Shown one piece after another: positions 47,925 to 61,510 of a stretch of 64,000 bases of DNA (its first letter is position 1; each line of letters opens with the position of its first letter). A model generated the notes under the pieces. That model was not told where the DNA came from. It worked only from the letters and a program-made list of their open reading frames with translations, and did not search any database. The stretch covers positions 1,240,001 through 1,304,000 of the forward strand of contig MCFH01000001.1 in the NCBI GenBank assembly GCA_002104945.1, read 5' to 3'. The position numbers and the translations under genes were made by a program. The stretch comes from Piromyces finnis finn (Eukaryota; Fungi; Neocallimastigomycota).

Positions 47925-50766
47925 TTTTGTATTGTTATTATTACTACTTAAAATATTATTTATTATTATATTTTCATAAGATAAATTAATTTAATTTGTA
48001 TTATTTAATTTTACTTTGTATTTTTATATAAAAATTTATTAAAGAATTGATAAAATAGAAACGAAATCTTCAGAATTTCTAAAGAAAAAAAAAAACTTTA
48101 TTTATTCTTTAAAAAATAATAACTTTCATTTAATTATCTGGTATTTAACTAATTATAGAGATTATGAATATTCTGATTATGAAATTAAAAATAAAAAGAA
48201 AAAAGAAAACTATATATTAGATGTAATTGTCTTTTATATATACTGTAATTTGTAAAATTATTTGATATCTTTTTTCTTTTTCTTTTTTTTTATTCAATTA
48301 TATAAGAGTAATAACTTATTTCATCTTATGTTTTAATGTTTTATAATATAATATTTAAAATTTTAAAATTTTAAAAAAAAATAAAAATTTATGGAAAAAA
48401 AAAAAATAATAATAATAATAAATAAATATAATTATAAATTATAGGGGATATATAATATATAAGTATTTAAATGATTAATTTTTTAAACTTTATTAATAAT
48501 AATAAAATTATATATTTGATGCATAAGAATTAATTACAAATATAATAATTTGGTGTTGAAAAAATAAGGCAACAAACAGTTATTTCTTTTTTTTAAAAAA
48601 AAAAGAAAAAAAAATTATATTGATATACATAATATTATTTTACAAGTTAATATTTTTTCATTTCAATAAAGCTTAATATAGCAGCTAATAACAGATAATT
48701 TCAAATTGTTTTTTGTATATTTATAATAATATTAAGGGTGCATTCATCATATAACAATGAAATTAAGATTTTTATTTAGGAACAAATCCTGTTTAGAATC
48801 AAGCTCATATAACCCATATAGATGGTAGGAGGTAATTAAGTATAATAATAATTAAAAATAAAAATTTTAATTGAATTTATATTTAAAACCATAATAATAA
48901 AAATTAATTATTATTTAAAGTTCTATTAATAAAGTCTGATTTTGTTATAAAAATAAAACTTTAAATTATATAATTAATATAAGAATCAATTTGCTATATG
49001 CAGCCACAATTATTTATTATTAATATCATACTAATAAAAAATTCATAATACAAATTATAATATTATATAATAATGTTGATTGGATAATAATAAATTAAAT
49101 TTAATATATAAAGTAAAATATATTATTATCCAATCATTTGTATTCATAATTAATAAATTTAAATTATATATTATAATATTATCACTATATTATCATTTTC
49201 TATTAAAAAATACAAGAATATTTTTGTCATACTTTTTAAACACATTTTAATTTATATCAAATTTTATCACATTATTTTTAAAAAAAATATATTTATTTAA
49301 GTTTATAATAATTTATTATATTGTGGCTTATTAATTTTATATCTATATAGTAGTCTAATCCTTGAAAATGATTATTTTGAAAGGTTTATTATAATTAAAA
49401 TTATAAAATGATAATAACTTTTGGTATTAACAGTAAATTCTTTCAATAAAATATTATATATATACAAGTCTAATTTAATTTAATAAAAATATATTGCTGT
49501 ATCATATTGTATCAACAGATTGGAGTGGTATTTGCTTAATTAAATAAAAGAAACTAGTTTCTAATTATTCTATCATCTATCTTAACTTTATAGTTCTCTT
49601 TCTAACGCTTTATAAAAACTTTTAAAATTAGAAATTCTATAAAATAATTTATTATTGAGTGTCTCCAAATTTTAAAAATTCTTGGTTAAATTTTTTTTTA
49701 AAAAAAAAATGAATCAAAAATTTAATAAAAAAAATAATTATTTTAACTAGCTAAAATTCAAATTCTTATTTTTAAATTTTTATTTTATTATAAAGTTTCG
49801 CTTAAATGTATTATTCATAATAAAAAGTATAATAATAAAAATATATAAATATAAATATAATATTAATAATTTAATAATTTTATTAATATAAAAGGATTTT
49901 ATATTTATTGTGCAAAAAATTAAATCATCATGAATATAGCATCTTAATTATCTTAACAATTTTTTATTAACATATATACTAATATTTTCTATATATTTAT
50001 ATGAAAAGAGAAAATATTTAAATATTTTAATTACTAAATATTATTTTTGATCATATTATAAATAATTATTTTTATTAGCAATTATTAGTATATAACATAT
50101 AAGGAAATAAAAATAATCCATGTTTTTTTCAATAAATAGATAAAAATAATAAGAATTCTTTGACTATTTAACAATGAGATTATTATTTATAATAATAAAA
50201 AAAAAATGGATATTTAAATAATAAATATTAATAAATAATTAAACATTTTAAAAAAAAAGGTTTTTGTTTTATTTTTATAATTTGAAATGAAGAGGATAAA
50301 TTAAAATAAAAAAGAGGAATGATTTAAATCATTTAAAATACTTAAAGTTTTTTAAGTTGTTAAAATAAATAAGATAAAGTTAAAAATAAATTTAAAAGTA
50401 TTATTATATAATATTAATATAATTCTTAAGGAAAATTATATTATATATACTATTATATATTATACAAGGTTAAAAAAAAATAAAGATAATAATATTTTGA
50501 AAGCATTTTGAAAAAAAAGTAAATATAAAATTATATATATTAAAATTTATGAAAAAATTTTATTTATAATTATTATTTTTACACTATGTAAAATATTAAT
50601 ATATAAATTTAAAAATATATATATTTTGTTATTTTTTAAATAACATGAAAATTAACTAAAAAAAAAGATGTGTTATATTTTTAATTTATCATTGCTTATT
50701 TATATTAATTATATTTAAAACTTGTTTTATATTTGATTATATAATAAAAGAAATAATACAATTAAA

Positions 50767-53302
50767 ATGAGGAATAAAATACATTTCTTCTTATTATTAT
50801 TATTATATATAATAATAAGGAATATAAGGAAAAGCTATGCAGAAATTAGCAATATTAATTATACAATAGATATAATAAAAGATAATAAAAAAACGGATAG
50901 ATATCAACTTACATTTAATTATTCCACATATCTATTTAATGAAGTTAATTCTCTTTTTACTTTGTATGTTTAAATATACTTCTTTTATATATTCACTTAT
51001 TTAACTTTATTCATATACATTATGTAAATTTTAGGGAAGAAGAAGAAGCCATAATATGTAATTCAAAAGATATTGATAAATCTGAAGAAGATAAGACAAC
51101 AATACTTTTTTGGGTTCCTACTTACTCCTTTAGTATTATTGTACTATTATTTAATGCATTCCCAATTTGGGAAAATAAACATAGAGATAATGGAAAACCT
51201 TTTTGTATGAGAATAAAAGATGTTGGGTGGTAAATACTAATGACATAAAAAACCAACTCTCTATATATATATATTAATTAACAACTATTCATCATTCATA
51301 AATAGGGTAGATAATGCAAATAAAGAAATTTGCACAAATGATGATCCCAATAATGAAGATTTATCATGTCCAGATTTAATTTTACTTGGAACAACTCAAG
51401 TACTATTTAAAAAACATTAATGAATATTTTCAATAATAATATACACTCTTATGTAAAAATCTTTATAAATTAACAATTCCTTTTATTATAGTTTTCATAT
51501 AGATATAGTAAAAATGATACATTAAACCTTGAAAAATATTTTAGAGAATACTTTAAAAAAAAAGGATATTCATTGGAAAGTTTAATGAATAAATATTCAA
51601 TGTATGATTGTAAGTAATTCAGTATAACATTAAATAACTAATCATTAAATTATTATTGTTAATATTCTAAAAAAAAATTTCTATACTGTACATATAATTA
51701 GATCACCTTGGAAATAGTTGGTTAGCCATTCCATTTATTGTTGATTTTAGAACTCTTAAATTTAATGTTACAACATTTGATTATTGTAAAAGTAAAGGAT
51801 ATGACCTTCATTATCCACCTGTAATATGCATATATATAATAATTTTTAATAATTTATTTTAATAAATCTAATATAAAATTTATATTTTATATTTCTCCTT
51901 TTAGCCATTTGAAAAAGATTATTGGTATATGTTATTTATTTTAAGAAAATAATATTCATATATTATCTTTAATTAAAACAAATTATTGATTTCTTAAATA
52001 TGAATATAAATATTATATATATGTTTTTAATCATACAAATAAGGGGACCCAATTACAAAGAGAAGGTATATAAAAATTAAAATTCTCTCTTAATACAAAA
52101 TGCATATACACCATAAAAAATTTAAATAAATATATTTAGATATTCATGCTATAATTTAAATATAAATACATAGTGGACTTGGGAAAAAGTATTTGAATAT
52201 TCAAAACTTATTACTGAATGCACTCAAAAACCTGGTTTTCAACTTCCATCTGGTTGTTCATATGAAGGTAAAAATATTAATATTATAATATATTTTATTT
52301 AATATATTTGCTAATTAATTTATTGATATAATCTTTACTTTTATCATTCAAAGATACAAAATTTTTTATAACCCTTTGTCAATCAATGAATATTCCATTT
52401 ATCACAGAAGATTCAGAAAGTGAAGTTAAAAAATGTGGTTTTCGAGACTATTCCGAAAAATTTTCCTTTTTGAAAGTTTTTTTTGAGAATCATTATGTAT
52501 ATATAAATTTAAACATATATGAATGACATGTTATTATAATTTTATAATGTTTAACTTTCGAATATTAATATTGCGATTTTTTTATATTACAGATTAGAAA
52601 ATGGTTAAATGAAGAACAAGTGTGGAAATGGAGAAATGAAACTTATCCAGATTCTATTGAAAAGCAGCCATTATTTAGAGGTGATATAATAAATATTGAT
52701 GAAAATATTAATGGAATTAAATTCTCTACACCGATAGAAGAAGTAATACTCATAATTAAATATTAAAACATTGTACAATTTATATATTAATTATTATATA
52801 CTTTTAATAATATTATATTAGAGCAAACCGAATATCAAATATACAGTAAATATATCATTATGTTATTTAAATAAAAAAAAATGGTTTTTATAATATGTAT
52901 AATAATTATGAAAAAAATATTAATTTATGAATATATCCTTATAATAATTTATTTTAATAGCATTTTCCAGGAACCACAACATGTAAGTTTAAATAAATTT
53001 CTATTATTGCTAGTTTCACTAAGTATTCATTATTAAAAAAATATATTTAAAAATAGTTCTTGGTGGTTCAGGTAATAGAAATTAAATAAATATTTAATCA
53101 TCATTTTATATTATATTAGTCAGTAATATAAATTAATGTATATTAATATTAACATAGGTATTATCATTACAAAAAAAACCAAATATCCTGACGAATTATT
53201 TGAATATATTGAAATTTTAATAAGTGAAGAATATCCATATGTTTCTTTAACAAATCCTAGTGTAACGGTAAGCTTTATTCCCCTTTTTGATAAATAATAA
53301 TA

Positions 53303-53356
<54 letters not shown>

Positions 53357-55674
53357 GTAAATAAATAAATAAATAATATATTATATTATATTATATAGCC
53401 ATTTGAAAATGTTCGTGGGAATCAGTAAGAAATATTTCTTCTTTTTTAATTAGAAGTTAATTATATAAGCTGATTATTAATTTAATTGTATAATATTTTA
53501 AATAACATAATTATGTAGATGTAAATATCAATCAAAAACTAAAAGGGAATTATGTAATTCATTACTACAGTCAAATGGAACATATCCATATTATTTTTCG
53601 TATAATAATAATAATAATTTAAATGTTATTTATATAACACAAAATTCGTTTGGAGAAAATAAAGGGATTTCAATAAATACAAAAAATTCAATGAATTCTG
53701 GAATATTTAATAATATATTTCATGACGCGGATTACATATGTGATGATGAAACAGATTTTCAAAATAATAAAATAACATATAACAGTGAATATAAAATAGA
53801 GCTCAAGATTAATGAAGATGAAACAATATTATTGAAATCCATGACTGACATAGTTTCCAACCAAGAACAATCACTTGATGATATATGCTCAATTTTTGAT
53901 GAAACCATAAAAAATGCAAAACCTTATCAAGTATATACTTAAATATATATAAATCATTTATTATAAAATTACACAAAACTAAATTTACATATTAACTTAA
54001 TTAATCTTCAATGTTTAAAGTTTCCATATAGTACATTGTATGTTAAAATTTTAAATTATAATTTTTAATCAGACTATTATGTATTAATATATTTATTATA
54101 TAACATTATGTTAGTGGTGAAATTAATATTTTTGAATATAGAGCTCCGATTTCACTTATGCTATCACATTTTTATTATAAGCATAACGATACTGAAAGTT
54201 CTCTTAAAGATATTATTAATGAATGTTGTGATATTATTGATGATACTTTTCTTCCAAGATGTAGTGAATCTAAAAATATAAAATTTAAACTTAGTGAATG
54301 TGATACAAAAAGGCATAAACAAAAAATTATCTTCATAAATTGTAAAATTGATAATGAAGATATAAAAAATGAAATTAGCTGTTCATATATACCATATAGT
54401 AATTATAAGGGAATTATAATTGAAATTTATGATTTGTTGTCTTTTTTTTTTGAATTAATTTCTTTAATCATTCTAATCATGTAATATTATATTATAGATA
54501 TATAATATATGTTTTTATCTTTATTAAGTATTTATATTTAAATCCTTTTATATTCTTATTGCCATAATTATATAGAAAACGTGATGATAGACACATTCGT
54601 AAAGGTATAAAATTTTTAGTTGGAATCATTATTTCAAGTATGTTATTGGATATATCAGTTATATTCTGGATTGGAAAATATTCACATTCTAAATGCATTA
54701 TTAAATTTTGGATGTTAATTTGTGGGGTAATTTGAATATAATAAAATTAAAAAAAAAAATTAATTATAACTATTCATTTCATTTTAACACCTATTTATAA
54801 CACAGATGACAGGTTTTATAAGTTCATATTCAATTAAAGCAGAAATTATTATTTCAGTATTTAAAAATAGGAGTTTAAAAAAATCAAATAATAAATATAG
54901 AAGTTATTTTGTATATATTCTTATAAGTATAATTGAACTAGTTTTATTAAGTATATGGACATTTGGTAATAAAATAGAAAAAAGAATAGCCTATATTGAG
55001 AATATTGGATATTATGAGTATGATTCATGCTCTCTTGGTAGTGAAGGAATTTTAACAATGATATTTGTCGTTGAATTTTCTTTATTAGGACTATCAATTA
55101 TTATGGCATACCTAGGAAAAAATAGTAAGTATTCTTTATTATAGAATTTCCATTATGAATTTAATATTTATTTATTCTATAATTCAATAATTAATTGATA
55201 GTCCCGGCTGCATTTAATGAGGTAATTATATATATAATAAAATATAAACATAATAATTACAGTACATATTAAAAATTAAATTATTTATATATTAAAGTCA
55301 AAAAAAATATTTATAACTTCATTATTAAGTATTTTTGTGGTAAGTTTATGCATAAAATATATAGATTAATTTAAAGTAATATTATTAGTATTTATTAATA
55401 TTTGATCTTAATTATTTAATTGTTTAATTACATTATAAATTGATAGATTTTATCAAGTTATATATCAGTTATATTTAAAACGGAGAACACAAATATTGAC
55501 TATTTTATGGTATTAATAATTATTACTATTACTTTAATTATTAATATTGTTTTTATTGGTCAAACATTTTTGGTTTTGTTTGACATAACAATAAGTGATA
55601 ATACCTCAGTTCTTGTGGTAGTTAGTAACTTAAACAAAGAAGAAATAAAAATGTCAAATTTTTCATCTGGATAG
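50767..55674 (+). CDS. Class C-like 7TM GPCR with N-terminal bacterial-type extracellular solute-binding (SBP family 1-like) domain, paralogue A
   Basis: About 23 exons join in frame: signal peptide; CPDLILLGTTQ; WLAIPFIVDFRTLKFN; YPP..WTWEKVFEYSK; LGGSGIIITK; Cys-rich linker; seven hydrophobic segments with KCIIKFW (TM3 Cys), IELVLLSIW, YDSC (ECL2), PAAFNESKKIF; TAG 55672-55674. Confidence 0.85.
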
Positions 55675-56536
55675 TTAAAAATATAAAAATTAATAATATA
55701 TTTATAAAAAATATTAGAAATTTATAATTTAATAATTTTCAATATAATAATCTATTAATTAAACTTGAATATAATATTTATATTATCAATAACTTTTATT
55801 TTTTTTCAATAATAAATAATATTATTTATTTAAAATAAATAAATGAAAAAAAAATTAAATTATTTAAGTAAACCAATAAATAAATAAATGTATAAAAAAA
55901 AAGTTAAAATAATAAAAAGTGCCCAAGTATGAATAAATTTTTATCTTTTCTTTATATTAATATTGTTTTTAATATAAAGAAAAGATAAAAAAAAATAGTA
56001 ATTTTAAAATTATTTATTAAAATTCAATATAAATATATAAATATAGGGTTCTGTTATAAAAATGATATTTATAAAGACTTTGAGAGGGAGGTTTTGTATT
56101 TACTTCTCTATGATCTTTTATTTTCTATCTTGTCATGAACTTTTCTTTATTATTTTCTATTATTTATACTATTTATAAATGATTATTTCACCTATTAAAA
56201 TGATATATAACTTTTATAATATAATATACAAAATATTATAAAAATATGACATATGGGATTAATAAGAGTTAATTAATAATTTTCTTATTTGTAATAAGTG
56301 ATATAAAGGCACACAAAATTCTATATGAACTATATAAAATATTAAACTTAATTATTAGCTATTTCTAGTGTTTCCTACATTCATAATACATTATATAAAA
56401 TTTCATTACATTATGTATATGTTGTTTGTTTAGATTTTTGAAATATTATGTTTCTTATTTAAATCTAATTTAATAATTATATTTATATTTTATTATTCTT
56501 TTATATCAATTATATGGCAGAAAAGTATTTTATAAA

Positions 56537-58744
56537 ATGCTATTTAAATTAAATGATATACTACTATATATTATAATTTTAAGTATAAAGATAAAATCAT
56601 GTCTTGCTTTATCTTCAGATAATAGTAATAAACCTCTTCATTTTATTTTGGATTTTTACGATACTTATGATGAACATTTTCATTATAATTACACATATAA
56701 TTATTCAACTAATATGTTTAATGAATATGAAAATATAAAAAATTTGTATGTTCATAAAATAATTATAGTTTATGTAAATTATGACAATCCTTTTTATATA
56801 CAAAATAAATATTAATATTTAAAAAATATTTTATAGTTATAGCGTACAATCATTTGTAATATGTAGTGATGAAGATTATGGAAAAAAAGATATAAATACT
56901 TTATTATTTTGGAATGCTCCATATACATATTATTTTGAAATACAGGCAGCTATTGTAAATGCTTTTCCAATATGGCTAAATATGCAAAGAAAAGAAAGAG
57001 GAATGTCATTTTGTTTAGAATTATACAATTCCGGATGGTATATTTATTATTTACAAAATAATTATAACCGGACCTCATATTGACATTGTAAAAATAAATT
57101 GATAGGGTTGATAATGTTAATAAAGAAATTTGTACAGATGATCCATCAACACCATGCCCTGATATTATAATGCTTGGAACAACACAAGTATAAATTAATA
57201 ATATTCTATACTAATTAAATAATTATATATTAATAATAATTGTATGTTAATTTTTTTTTTTTACAGTTCGCAGCTAGAATTAATGATTCCCTAAATTTAA
57301 ATAAATATTTTAAGCTGTACCTAAAAAGACATGGAAAATCTATTGAAAGCATGATAAATAAATATTCATATTATGATTGTATGATTAAACATTTCAATAT
57401 ATTTAATATTAAAAAAATATTATTTAAACAATAGTCATTTATAAATTAAATTTGATTATAACTTATTAATCATTATAGATCATCTCGATAATAGCTGGTT
57501 AGCTATTCCATTATTAACTGATTTTAGAATTTTTCAATTTAATATGACAACATTTGATTATTGTATAAATAAAAACTATGATCTTAAATATCCACCTGTA
57601 AAATAGGATTATAGAATTATAATTAAAAATGTTTTTTCATTAAAAATATTAAATTTAAATCATTTTATTAAATATACTTCTATATAAAAATTATATATTT
57701 GTATGTATAACATTTATCATTTATAGCCATATAACATGGATTATTGGTTAGTTTAGTTTTTTTTCTTTTTTTACTTAATACTAAAATAATGCTAGTTTTT
57801 TTTTTTTTTTTTTTTTTTTTGCTATATAATAATTTAAAAATTAATTAATATAATTATATATAATTATAGGGGTGAAAATTATAAAGAAAAGGTATATATT
57901 TGATTTTATTTCATTGTTATCAAGTTATTAATCGTAATATATTAAAATACTATAATGCTTTAAATCATTTTATATATAAGTGGACATGGAATAAAGTTTT
58001 GGAATATTCAAAAATGATTACAGAATGTACAAATAAACCAGGATTTAGTATAAGTAGAAGTAATTCATACGAAGGTATAATTAATTTAAAAAATTATTGA
58101 AAAAACTATATACTATAATATTGATATGTATTTTTTATATTTAAAAAAGATACAAAACTATTTATAATAATATGTCAAAGTCTAGGGATTCCATTTTTCA
58201 CTGAAGACAACGATGGTACAAAAAAGTGTGGCTTCAGAAAAAAGGAATATATTGAAAAACTATCACTAGTTAAAGATTTATTTGAAAACAAATATGTAAA
58301 CATAATATATATAAATAAATAGAATTAAAAAACTAAAATAATTAGTAAAATACTTATATATAATATTTAAATAAAATAGATTGAGAAATGGTTAGTAGAA
58401 GACCAAGTATGGGAATGGAGAAATAATTCATACCCAAAAAATATTGATGAACAACCAATATTTAGAATTTATGAAAGTGAAGATTATACAGATGGAATTA
58501 AAATAAACGGACTTCATTTTGTAGCGTCGTATACTGATGTAATTAATACCATAAACAAAAATATTGCATAAAGACTATATAATAATAAGAATAAAAATAA
58601 TAATAATAATTAATCATAAATACTTTATTTTCTCATATATTAGAAATGTCCTGATGTTAAAACAGTCGTATGATTAAAAAATATTATAAAAATAAATTAA
58701 TAATGATAAAAATATTATTATATTTATATATTAATATTTTAATA

Positions 58745-58775
<31 letters not shown>

Positions 58776-61510
58776 TAGTATACGCCAGGATCATCATGTA
58801 AAAGTTGTTTTATAATTATATTAAATTAAAAATATTTTATAACAATTTTAATATAATATATATAGTTTTAGGAGGTTCAGGTAAAATTTTAGAAAATATA
58901 TAATGAAAAATCAACTGAATAACTATTAATAAATTATTTGATAAAGGTCTTATTATAACAAAAAAAACAAAATTTCAAGATGAAGCATTTGATTTAATAG
59001 ATATATTAATAAATGATAAATATCCATTCTTTGTAGAAATTAATACAGCAACAACTGTAAATTTATTAAATAATAAATAAATAATAATAATTAATTCCTA
59101 ATTTCATTTATTTTATACTGATTTGAATATAATATTAATTTAAATGAATATATATTTATAAAGCCATTTGAAAATATACATGGGAACGAGTATGATAAAT
59201 ATGAATTCATTTTATATAAAAAATTTAAAACATATTAATTATCATGTTATTATATATATATAGATGTAATGATTCACAAAAGACAAAAAAGGAATTATGT
59301 CATAATATTTTAGAGATGGATGGAACTTATCCATATTATTATATCAAAGATAACAAAACTAATGTTGTATATTTAACACATATAATATCAAATTCAGAAA
59401 GAGGAGTATATATCAATACAAATATTTCACAAAATTTGTCATTAATAGATAATACGAATAAAGAAAGTTATTATATGTGTGACAATCAAGTAAATTACGA
59501 AAGGAATTCTATTACATATTATGATGATTTCAAAATTGAATTTCCAATTAATGATAATGAAACCATTATTCTTAAATCTATGAATGATATTACTAAAACC
59601 TATGAGCAGTCAAATAGTTTAATTTGTTCTATTTATGATGAGATTTTGAAAAATGCTAAACCATATCAAGTAAAGATAAATGAAAAAGAAAAATATAAAA
59701 ATACATATTAAATATAAAGAAATATATCTTATTAAATACTAATATAAAAAATATTTCTTATGCATAAATATAGTTTCCATATAGTACATTGTAAATATTC
59801 AAATTCATTTTTATATTATAAAGTATTAAGCATATTAAAATTTTCATTAATTTATTTTATTAAAATTTATAAATAATAGCAATGAAATAAATGAAATTGA
59901 GTATAAATCACCTGTATCAATTCTTTTAGCACATCTTTATTATAAGCATAATGAAACAAATGAAGGAACTTTTGATAATATAATAAATGAATGTTGTGAT
60001 ATAATGGATGAAATACTTCTACCAAATTGTTATAATTATAATAAAATAAAAATTTCTCTAGGAACTTGTAATGAAAAAACTCAAAAAATGTCTATTGAAT
60101 ATTTAAATTGTAAACCTGGATCAGATATTGAATTGTATCCGGAAGAAATAGCTTGCCCTTATATTCCTTATAAGAATTATAAAGGAATTGGAATAATTGT
60201 GATAATCAGTATAGCCATTATTATTAAACTTACCTTATTAATCGTTATAATTATGTAAATTTCTCTAATACAGAAATATATTTTTTATTGAATATGCTCT
60301 AATTTATTCTTCTTTGTTTTCAATTACTAATATGTTTATATAGATATCGTAAAGAAAGATGTATATATATAAGTGGTTTAGGCTTTTTAATTATTCTCGT
60401 ATTATCAAGTATTGTCTTGGACTTTTCAGTTTATTTCTGGGTTGGTGATATCATTAAATTTAAATGCATTACAAAGCTTTGGTTACTTATATGTGGTGTA
60501 ATATTATCTTTCTCTATTTAATTTAAAAAGTATCAGAAAAATAAATTTGATTACTTAAATATACTATTTTAATATATTTTAAATAATAAAAGATCACTGG
60601 TATCTTATGCTCATTTGCCATTAAAAATGAAATTATTATATCAGCATATAATAATAATAGTATTACAAAAGTAAATAGTAAATATAAAAGTTCTATTATT
60701 TACATTGTTGTAATAATAATTCAAATAGCAGTACTAATCATATGGACATTTGCTCAAAGCGGAGTTGATATAAAGTATAATAATTTAAGTAATAATGCAC
60801 CTTATATATATAAAACATGTTCTCGCGGAAGTCAACCTTTATTATCAATAATATTTGGAATAGATTATATTTTATTATTTCTATTAATATATATATCATA
60901 TAAAGGAAGAAATAGTTAGTAATCACAATATTTTAAAAAATTATATTTATTATTTTTATATTAACTATTTTATTATATTTTATTTAAATATCTATCATAC
61001 TAATGAAATAAATAATAGTACCAGCAGAATTTAATGAAGTATTTTTTATAAATTATTATAATTATATGTTTTAATGTAAAAACATTTTCTAACTTTTATT
61101 ATAATATAGTCTAAAAAAGTTTTTATTTCATCACTGATTTCCATATTATTAGTATGATAAATAATAATAAACCATAATATATATAATATGTGAATAATAC
61201 TAATATATTACTAATGTTAATATTACTATTGATATTTAAATAGCTATCTCTTTGCTATCTCTCAATGATGATGGAAATGGTAAATGAGATTCAATATATA
61301 TTTATTTCTACAGCGACAATAATTACTTCAGTAATTATTGTAATTCTATTTGTAGGAATCAAACTATTAATAGTATTCAATATTGATATTATGAGTTCTG
61401 TTGATAACACATCTGTGGTGGTAGTTGTTAGTAAAAATATCAATGGAAATGAAGATACTAAAGAAAAAATGGCATCTGGGTATATATATAATAGTGGAAT
61501 CTTAATATAA
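56537..61510 (+). CDS. Class C-like 7TM GPCR with N-terminal bacterial-type solute-binding domain, paralogue B
   Basis: Collinear exon structure with paralogue A: CPDIIMLGTTQ; WLAIPLLTDFRIFQFN; YPP..WTWNKVLEYSK; LGGSGLIITK; YRKERCIYISG; KCITKLW; IQIAVLIIW; IPAEFNESKKVF; stop at 61510. Confidence 0.85.

Follow-up and report, generated by a model that had tools for sequence, protein, structure and literature searches.

Two adjacent Piromyces finnis genes of the gut-fungal class C receptor family with a type II SBP-like ectodomain

The window, a stretch of 64,000 nucleotides of contig MCFH01000001.1 (assembly GCA_002104945.1) from the anaerobic gut fungus Piromyces finnis, carries between positions 50767 and 61510 two adjacent genes on the same strand, which are listed here with their exons and domains.

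50767-55674, + strand: gene 1 (BCR36DRAFT_407975 of P. finnis), 967-969 aa, 23 exons, from a homologue-guided GT..AG spliced alignment
50767-50963, 51035-51229, 51306-51399, 51492-51609, 51702-51820, 51905-51924, 52044-52065, 52174-52267, + strand: gene 1 exons 1-8
52354-52496, 52593-52742, 52822-52845, 52961-52982, 53057-53071, 53158-53267, 53399-53424, 53519-53930, + strand: gene 1 exons 9-16
54021-54037, 54115-54480, 54576-54726, 54806-55124, 55202-55221, 55298-55339, 55447-55674, + strand: gene 1 exons 17-23
50767-50841, + strand: gene 1 N-terminus resembling a signal peptide (about residues 1-25), with a hydrophobic run after a basic n-region in the translation
51099-53424 (approximate), + strand: gene 1 N-terminal part of the SBP fold, both lobes up to the insert (about residues 88-449), from Pfam SBP_bac_1 and structural alignment
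53519-53930, + strand: gene 1 exon 16, a beta-rich insert of about 135 aa in the SBP C-lobe with conserved Cys residues at its borders
54021-54223 (approximate), + strand: gene 1 C-terminal helices completing the SBP fold, encoded by micro-exon 54021-54037 and the start of exon 18
54224-54406 (approximate), + strand: gene 1 Cys-rich linker with six Cys, mostly beta, not NCD3G
54404-55575 (approximate), + strand: gene 1 class C 7TM domain, exons 18-23 (Pfam 7tm_3, residues 689-929)
56537-61510, + strand: gene 2 (BCR36DRAFT_579057 of P. finnis), 986 aa in the present model, 23 exons, from a homologue-guided GT..AG spliced alignment
56537-56745, 56837-57037, 57106-57187, 57267-57378, 57479-57597, 57727-57746, 57870-57891, 57981-58074, + strand: gene 2 exons 1-8
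58150-58295, 58380-58538, 58644-58667, 58779-58797, 58866-58880, 58947-59056, 59164-59189, 59264-59669, + strand: gene 2 exons 9-16
59774-59790, 59880-60254, 60344-60497, 60593-60914, 61019-61038, 61110-61151, 61244-61510, + strand: gene 2 exons 17-23
59264-59669, + strand: gene 2 exon 16, the insert of about 135 aa as in gene 1
60187-61384 (approximate), + strand: gene 2 class C 7TM domain (Pfam 7tm_3; TM1-TM7 from hydropathy)

A first-pass annotation made from the sequence had described two adjacent paralogues at exactly these coordinates, and the spliced alignment agrees and shows both genes to be intact, with neither stops nor frameshifts. Both are already deposited in GenBank as P. finnis models and are named family 3 GPCR proteins in UniRef. 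Gene 1 starts with the ATG at 50767 and its product is 99.6% identical to the deposited protein P0041, from which it differs by two residues at the intron 1 junction. A spliced RNA contig of 2,996 nt is collinear with gene 1 over 50700-55671, its offsets agreeing with each exon length, and as this contig spans the whole gene the SBP and 7TM parts of gene 1 belong to one transcript and not to separate genes. Spliced contigs of gene 1 were found in four runs from three studies, and the letters of its 17-nt micro-exon (54021-54037) in RNA contigs of four runs. Gene 2, whose stop codon ends with base 61510, is 100% identical to the deposited P. finnis protein P0043 over 927 aa; the deposited model begins at an internal ATG (56714) and ours upstream at 56537. 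The closest relative of gene 2, P0037, is an uninterrupted ORF of 982 aa on contigs of 3.0-3.1 kb from one JGI metatranscriptome sample and one SRA run.

The two products share 49% identity over 911 aa. Seven micro-exons are present in each gene, and all 22 introns occupy the same position and phase in both paralogues and across genera; 15 of them lie upstream of the insert exon, where the N-terminal extension and the SBP are encoded. The motifs quoted in the first-pass annotation were all recovered in both spliced proteins, namely CPD(L/I)I(L/M)LGTTQ, WLAIP...DFR...FN, YPPP...WTW.KV.EYSK and FLGGSG.IITKK, the last being assembled by splicing across micro-exons, together with IPA.FNESKK before TM6.

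The membrane part was assigned with Pfam, where 7tm_3 matched gene 1 with 91.8 bits (E 7e-26) and gene 2 with 91.0 bits (E 1e-25) at a curated cut-off (GA) of 33.5 bits, covering positions 3-242 and 6-248 of the 251 model positions, respectively. The region 54788-55141, a single gene 1 exon, exceeds this cut-off by itself. Hydropathy recovered all seven TM segments in gene 2, one of them listed twice, and TM1, TM2 and TM4-7 in gene 1, whose TM3 stays under the threshold yet lies inside the 7tm_3 match. The closest class C matches of the 7TM are GPR158 (E 9e-7, 31.9 bits) and mGlu1, and in a HMMER alignment the TM3 Cys, the TM3 Lys, the ECL2 Cys and P-x-x-F-x-E, present in both paralogues, fall on the same residues of human GPR158. 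Class C hallmarks are the TM3-ECL2 Cys pair, the TM3 Lys and, where TM6 begins, F-x-E (ionic lock). A type I flytrap is typical of the animal class C members and is not demanded by the 7tm_3 definition, GPR158 also being without it.

Ahead of the 7TM lies an extracellular N-terminal domain of about 690 aa. SBP_bac_1 was matched with 26.6 bits in gene 1 (P0041, residues 154-431), only marginally over the curated cut-off (GA) of 26 bits, and with 34.7 bits in gene 2 (P0043). The sequence signal of the SBP is thus weak, since the ectodomain profile finds no match among PDB sequences at E <= 1. The AF2 model of the ectodomain (pLDDT 86.1, pTM 0.78) shows a two-lobed alpha/beta fold that can be superposed on solved type II SBPs over the whole chain, and Foldseek returned ABC SBPs for all top 50 hits (best E 8.9e-13), the large majority of them oligosaccharide binders. 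The structural neighbours are all MalE-like type II SBPs, at 10-16% identity to solved SBPs. In gene 1 the structural alignment runs from model residue 62 (residue 88 of the protein) to about 620 with some 365 residues aligned, and the helices at model residues 545-613 lie inside it. Neither protein has a Pfam match to ANF_receptor. The predicted model therefore supports a type II SBP fold, a periplasmic-binding-protein class other than the type I (ANF/LIVBP) flytrap found in class C receptors of animals, as the first-pass annotation had proposed.

Between both domains, the gene 1 linker contains six Cys residues (630, 631, 642, 655, 669 and 682) and strands at model residues 626-657; neither NCD3G nor any other Pfam domain was matched in residues 590-700. 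GABA-B likewise has no NCD3G, nor has any non-metazoan member (Krishnan 2012, PMC3251606). The proposed order of signal peptide, SBP ectodomain, Cys-rich linker and 7TM was hence recovered by translation, Pfam, hydropathy and the GPR158 alignment. As the ectodomain models as a type II SBP, the TM region matches 7tm_3 and both lie on one spliced mRNA in gene 1, the architecture read from the sequence stands, and the data support chimeric proteins in which a sugar-SBP fold of the ABC type (type II) is joined to a class C 7TM.

Such receptors are not new. Class C GPCRs of gut fungi with a type II SBP at the N-terminus have been described by Seppala et al. (2016, Microb Cell Fact 15:212, PMC5168858), as the first-pass annotation had correctly indicated by its mention of transcriptome surveys. 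Among about 100 such receptors roughly half carried type II SBP domains resembling those of sugar uptake, and P. finnis was one of the three strains, so that the family has been reported from its transcriptome. Genes 1 and 2 belong to this family, with which they share the type II sugar-SBP-like ectodomain, the class C 7TM and the lack of both ANF and the nine-Cys domain. Relatives at 40-55% identity were found in Piromyces, Anaeromyces and Neocallimastix, as well as shorter SBP-bearing relatives in Orpinomyces. What we add are exon models including the micro-exons, RNA-verified for gene 1, a corrected start of gene 2, a confident assignment of the oligosaccharide-SBP fold, evidence for an ancient fusion and a delimited insert, all of which ease the design of expression constructs and binding assays.

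From the oligosaccharide SBPs of bacterial ABC importers (PDB 5ysf, 7x0i CbpB, 7c6y, 3uor), to which identity is only 10-16%, the proteins of genes 1 and 2 differ in being fused to a 7TM, in an N-terminal extension of about 60 residues, in the 135-aa insert and in having no known ABC permease partner, and their genes are intron-rich and eukaryotic. [quoted passage not shown] A type II binding-protein fold can thus serve class C receptors as a flytrap, which matters for receptor evolution and for sugar biosensors.

Regarding the origin of the fusion, the first-pass annotation had suggested an independently assembled receptor built from a probably horizontally acquired bacterial domain; read as a recent event, the SBP of a (rumen) bacterium would have been joined in the gut-fungal lineage to a resident class C 7TM. 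SBP_bac_1 is an overwhelmingly prokaryotic family, which makes an ultimate bacterial origin plausible, and HGT has been proposed for the gut-fungal SBPs (Seppala 2016, PMC5168858). However, a bacterial relative of the SBP part was detected neither in a word-indexed search of 5.8e9 proteins nor in PDB sequences (E <= 1), in 185,579 prokaryotic genomes scanned by pattern or by tblastn against 72,556 plasmids, and the GC content of 11-24% and the 22 introns conserved across genera also speak against such a transfer. Instead, the SBP part matches that of an SBP-7TM receptor from the amoebozoan Dermamoeba algensis (transcript P0051) with 29-30% identity and blastp E values of about 1e-38 to 1e-40 in a small local database. 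P0051 is homologous in both halves, scores 136 bits with 7tm_3, has stronger SBP_bac_1 and SBP_bac_8 signals than genes 1 and 2 and is without the insert of about 135 aa. Fusions of SBP_bac_1 and 7tm_3 have been published for Allomyces macrogynus (Krishnan 2012, PMC3251606) and Plasmodiophora brassicae (Rolfe 2016, PMC4815078), and these share the two-domain architecture with genes 1 and 2 as does the Dermamoeba receptor, the first two compared here by their architecture. A Paraphysoderma fragment matches the P0051 ectodomain, yet carries only 7tm_3. The conserved introns, the fusions in Allomyces, Plasmodiophora and Dermamoeba and the lack of a detectable bacterial relative give sequence-based evidence that the SBP-7TM fusion is ancient, and it appears quite unlikely that gut fungi assembled it recently from a rumen bacterial domain.

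We consider it fairly probable that genes 1 and 2 are class C receptors of the described family, with the SBP as a probable sugar flytrap and an old fusion behind them. The receptor would be secreted via its signal peptide and display the two-lobed SBP on the cell surface, anchored by the class C seven-helix bundle. The ligand would be a soluble carbohydrate, probably an oligosaccharide of plant origin, that would enter the cleft separating both SBP lobes and make them close. A short, disulfide-rich beta linker may pass this movement on to the 7TM, probably in a dimeric receptor as is known from class C, whereupon the 7TM might activate a heterotrimeric G protein and so tune zoospore chemotaxis or carbohydrate-utilisation genes. 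Ligand class, coupling to lobe closure, dimerisation, G-protein coupling and physiological output are here inferred, and no published findings on ligand, dimer or G-protein coupling of gut-fungal SBP class C receptors were found in the literature. GPR158 signals via RGS7 and not by classical G-protein activation, and coupling may be atypical here too, because GPR158 is the nearest solved 7TM. In co-culture with methanogens, Avicel and xylan have been reported to raise the transcription of SBP homologues and class C GPCRs (Brown 2021). In our view, SBP class C receptors are the leading candidates for plant-sugar sensing in anaerobic gut fungi.

By analogy to its structural neighbours a sugar is a plausible ligand. 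Sugar specificity is not established, as the leading neighbours differ by no more than 2 Z units and include same-fold binders of other solutes, namely UgpB (glycerol-3-phosphate) and a dinucleotide-binding protein. The same architecture could sense other small solutes, such as glycerophosphodiesters, nucleotides or dinucleotides, or metabolites from bacteria or methanogens, but this appears rather unlikely given the prevalence of oligosaccharide binders among the highest-ranked neighbours and the top 50, the niche of P. finnis in plant cell-wall degradation and the similarity to sugar-uptake SBPs, which was found invariably by Seppala 2016 (PMC5168858). That the proteins capture or tether sugars at the surface or are transporter components instead of signalling would agree with the label of putative transporters for the Plasmodiophora fusions (Rolfe 2016, PMC4815078) and with the sugar sequestration discussed for stand-alone SBPs (Seppala 2016, PMC5168858). 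We regard it as highly improbable, as the proteins span the membrane with a full-length 7tm_3 domain in which the Cys pair of the disulfide, F-N-E and the TM3 Lys are conserved, features of a receptor activation machinery and not of any known transporter fold, and as ABC importer membrane components, including a permease partner, were not found in gut-fungal transcriptomes (Seppala 2016, PMC5168858).

Returning to the probable sugar-flytrap receptors, the adjacency of the two divergent genes on one strand raises the idea of obligate partners like GABA-B1/B2 or T1R2/T1R3, with one binding the ligand and the other coupling, and class C receptors do usually function as dimers. However, no SBP motif and no 7TM hallmark is missing from either protein; there is therefore no sign of split roles, and both are without a coiled-coil tail. 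In addition, they are not sister paralogues: the family tree is a star radiation in which the pair is not recognisably conserved, and the Anaeromyces and Neocallimastix relatives examined are solitary, so that an obligate heterodimer seems improbable. A different and doubtful suggestion concerns the lineage-restricted beta-rich insert encoded by one exon, which might be a new functional domain, maybe a dimerisation surface, a lid or an additional glycan-binding site. In that case the gut-fungal subfamily would work unlike bacterial SBPs and other class C receptors, and the tandem pair could possibly heterodimerise through it. No recognisable fold match was found for the insert; a search of 1.84e9 representatives gave 35 matches at E <= 1e-3, and the 20 that were compared are members of the gut-fungal family or fragments of them.

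In the extremely AT-rich gene region (GC 11-24%), a scan of the pair for ORFs found no long ones, and on the + strand the stop-to-stop segments revealed short coding stretches in two collinear series. Gene models were built with our own protein-to-genome aligner, which allowed GT..AG introns in all three phases, and the full-length proteins (847-944 aa) among the HMMER matches to the exon at 53511-53939 served as guides. Two intact genes were obtained:

50767-55674, + strand, gene 1 (G1), 23 exons, 967 aa, intact
56537-61510, + strand, gene 2 (G2), 23 exons, 986 aa, intact

Every donor in both genes is GT and every acceptor AG, the introns range from 66 to 131 nt, and each gene contains seven to eight micro-exons of 15-26 nt. 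Those in the spliced model of gene 1 are:

51905-51924, 52044-52065, 52822-52845, 52961-52982, + strand, gene 1 micro-exons
53057-53071, 53399-53424, 54021-54037, 55202-55221, + strand, gene 1 micro-exons, continued

This density of micro-exons is unusual, and their position and phase are kept between the paralogues and across genera. Using BLAST against the spliced models we matched gene 1 to the deposited P. finnis protein P0041 (BCR36DRAFT_407975) with 99.6% identity, the sole difference being two residues at the junction of intron 1, and gene 2 to P0043 (BCR36DRAFT_579057) with 100% identity over 927 aa; the two genes are 49% identical to each other over 911 aa. The deposited 927-aa model of gene 2 begins at an internal ATG at 56714 and is without the signal-peptide part. 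An in-frame ATG upstream at 56537 adds 59 residues (exon 1 = 56537-56745), and the N-terminus from this predicted start would hold a signal-peptide-like hydrophobic segment that parallels the one of gene 1. Intron 14 of gene 1 carries a long simple repeat of the AAT/ATT type (53272-53365), whose translation in two of the frames is poly-N or poly-I; this repeat was left out of the comparison with RNA.

Sampled words of 53400-55700 were present at about 0.36-0.58 in four public runs from three studies, a share that exon-only sequence would give. In the public RNA run X1, compared with 50700-55700, one contig of 2,996 nt is collinear with 50700-55671 with the introns removed. The offsets between its blocks equal the exon sums exactly for exons 6-15 (626 nt), exon 17 (17 nt), exon 19 (150-151 nt) and exons 21-22 (61-62 nt). 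Micro-exons were thus found in spliced RNA contigs, where the letters between the sides of two joints are the micro-exons of 15 nt and 17 nt. As one spliced contig spans gene 1, the sugar-binding protein (SBP) part and the 7TM part belong to a single mRNA, and the fusion proposed in the first-pass annotation withstands the objection that the two parts might be separate transcripts. The model of gene 2 is supported by its identity to the deposited annotation, by its introns, all 22 of which have alignment column and phase in common with gene 1, and by its closest relative P0037, an uninterrupted ORF of 982 aa on contigs of 3.0-3.1 kb from one JGI metatranscriptome sample and one SRA run. With two intact ORFs, splicing and expression of gene 1 and conservation of the family, a reading of the pair as pseudogenes or artefacts is ruled out.

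Contigs of X2, a public run from a different study, show base differences to the window at 50851, 52686, 53829 and 54330, each in a single contig, and in a single contig an extra T after 54441 that would shift the frame; these could reflect a strain difference or assembly error. In one X2 contig 52927 is followed directly by 55677, so that 2,749 nt with TG..TT ends are skipped, and the shorter side has just 21 letters; this contig is most likely an artefact of chimeric assembly and not an isoform.

The class C 7TM domain read from the sequence is borne out by the Pfam model 7tm_3, which scores 91.8 bits in gene 1 and 91.0 bits in gene 2 (GA 33.5) with nearly the whole model covered. Among solved class C receptors, the 7TM half is closest to GPR158/mGlyR (E 9e-7), followed by mGlu1 (E 0.007), and in the HMMER alignment with GPR158 the TM3 Cys, TM3 Lys, ECL2 Cys and P-x-x-F-x-E are aligned. 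For the ectodomain SBP_bac_1 lies above its threshold (26.6 bits in gene 1, 34.7 bits in gene 2, GA 26) and SBP_bac_8 scores below threshold; neither protein has a Pfam match to ANF_receptor or NCD3G. Single SBP exons are too short and gave no Pfam matches. As a search of the ectodomain profile against PDB sequences returned no matches at E <= 1, a fold search was needed. For the ectodomain of gene 1, an AlphaFold2 model made from a 22-sequence alignment has a mean pLDDT of 86.1 and a pTM of 0.78, and its best 50 Foldseek matches in the PDB are all oligosaccharide-binding proteins of ABC importers (top E 8.9e-13), in agreement with the sugar-binding type of ectodomain claimed at first reading. 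About 60 residues stand N-terminal to the SBP fold, which is followed by a mostly beta linker with six Cys that is not an NCD3G domain.

A carbohydrate-sensing surface receptor is the best-supported reading of the pair, for which architecture, fold, hallmark residues, the single transcript of gene 1 and conservation were shown. In such a receptor the SBP lobes would close on a soluble carbohydrate, and their motion would be passed via the disulfide-rich linker to the class C 7TM, which would activate a G protein; the receptor is probably dimeric, and its output may be chemotaxis or control of carbohydrate use. The ligand may also be a non-sugar, since the structural neighbours of the ectodomain are tied and include UgpB and a dinucleotide binder. 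With regard to the carbohydrate receptor, no ligand, dimer or coupling data for these proteins were found in the literature searched, and Brown 2021 gives the function of these gut-fungal receptors as unknown.

The suspicion that the family had been reported before proved right. About 100 class C GPCRs, 32 of them listed in Piromyces, were described when the transcriptomes of three gut fungi, N. californiae, A. robustus and P. finnis, were analysed (Seppala 2016, PMC5168858). About half carry an SBP type II domain resembling prokaryotic sugar-uptake SBPs, none has ANF or nine-Cys domains, and independent fusions and possible HGT were suggested in the same work. In UniRef the two proteins of the window already bear the name family 3 GPCR protein. 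The first-pass finding is thus correct and rediscovers a family that was already known.

Horizontal acquisition of the SBP domain from bacteria, thought probable from the sequence alone, was not supported as a recent event. A word-indexed protein search with the SBP part yielded only Neocallimastigomycota proteins, the ectodomain profile had no match among PDB sequences at E <= 1, a scan with a single degenerate pattern found no relative in one genome each for 185,579 prokaryotic species, and tblastn against 72,556 plasmids gave no match at E <= 1e-3. Judged by these searches, each of limited sensitivity owing to the word index, the single pattern or the restriction to plasmids, a close bacterial donor is excluded and a deep bacterial ancestry is possible. 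The SBP part shares 29-30% identity (blastp E about 1e-38 to 1e-40 in a small local database) with that of P0051, an 800-aa protein with SBP_bac_1/SBP_bac_8 and 7tm_3 from the EukProt transcriptome of Dermamoeba algensis (Amoebozoa). P0051 may be a contaminant of this transcriptome; its ectodomain matches a 496-aa protein from Paraphysoderma (Blastocladiomycota) that carries only 7tm_3. SBP_bac_1 has been reported in eight class C receptors of Allomyces macrogynus (Krishnan 2012, PMC3251606), and the architecture SBP_bac_1 plus 7tm_3 in Plasmodiophora brassicae (Rolfe 2016, PMC4815078). Intron positions in common number 21 of 21 for the relative from Neocallimastix lanati and 20 of 22 for that from Anaeromyces robustus, so that fusion and exon structure are older than the radiation of the gut-fungal genera. 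Barring transfer among eukaryotes, the fusion is probably older than the phylum as well.

Structural alignments to SBPs start at model residue 62 and end near residue 620 with only about 365 residues aligned, showing that the fold is interrupted in its C-lobe by a segment of ~135 aa, after which three helices complete it. This insert is encoded as follows:

53519-53930, + strand, insert in gene 1 exon 16, a single exon and the largest in gene 1
59264-59669, + strand, insert in gene 2 exon 16, a single exon and the largest in gene 2

The exons of the SBP part around it measure 15-150 nt. With flanking introns of phase 2 and phase 0, the insert exon is not a symmetric shuffled exon. P0051, a distant relative, is without the insert. 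The exon (53511-53939) was used for an exhaustive HMMER search, which gave 35 representatives out of 1.84 billion at E <= 1e-3. Of these, 20 were compared with G1 or Pfam and proved to be family members from gut fungi or fragments; the weakest match of the search, P0035, is a protein of 2,506 aa matched in 12 short stretches. Modelled alone, the insert reaches a pLDDT of 80 (core about 90) and shows seven strands plus a helix at its C-terminus. Foldseek (best E 0.16, PH-like domains at TM 0.3-0.4) and the ESM Atlas (scores < 0.9, TM < 0.4) gave no convincing match, and from these and the HMMER comparisons neither a fold nor a family could be assigned.

A maximum-likelihood tree was calculated from 20 family members, and its gut-fungal part is a star with poor resolution. 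G2 is joined there to P0037 (100/99) and G1 has no definite place, which means that G1 and G2 are not sisters. At the two loci examined in other genera, those of P0002 (Anaeromyces) and P0036 (Neocallimastix), the adjacent paralogue is absent and both are single genes, which led us to reject a tandem arrangement there. Both paralogues keep the full set of SBP and 7TM motifs; a heterodimer of the two is a possibility, and these motifs give no sign of a GABA-B-like division of labour. The pair has unrelated genes as neighbours (CK2 beta, an unknown protein of 1,070 aa, an Atg4-like peptidase C54 and INTS13), and neighbours of the MFS/Sugar_tr or GH9-CBM10 type are absent from the window. As anecdotal observations (L001 6282-7859; L002 2173-5427), an MFS/Sugar_tr transporter gene is found about 2 kb away from P0002, and the gene of a GH9-CBM10 cellulase about 4.6 kb away from P0036. 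Three proteins of 501-553 aa from Orpinomyces, N. lanati and P. finnis (P0049, P0050 and P0011) have the SBP part with the insert and are without the 7TM; either they are genuine SBPs, secreted or anchored like those in Seppala 2016, or their gene models may be truncated.
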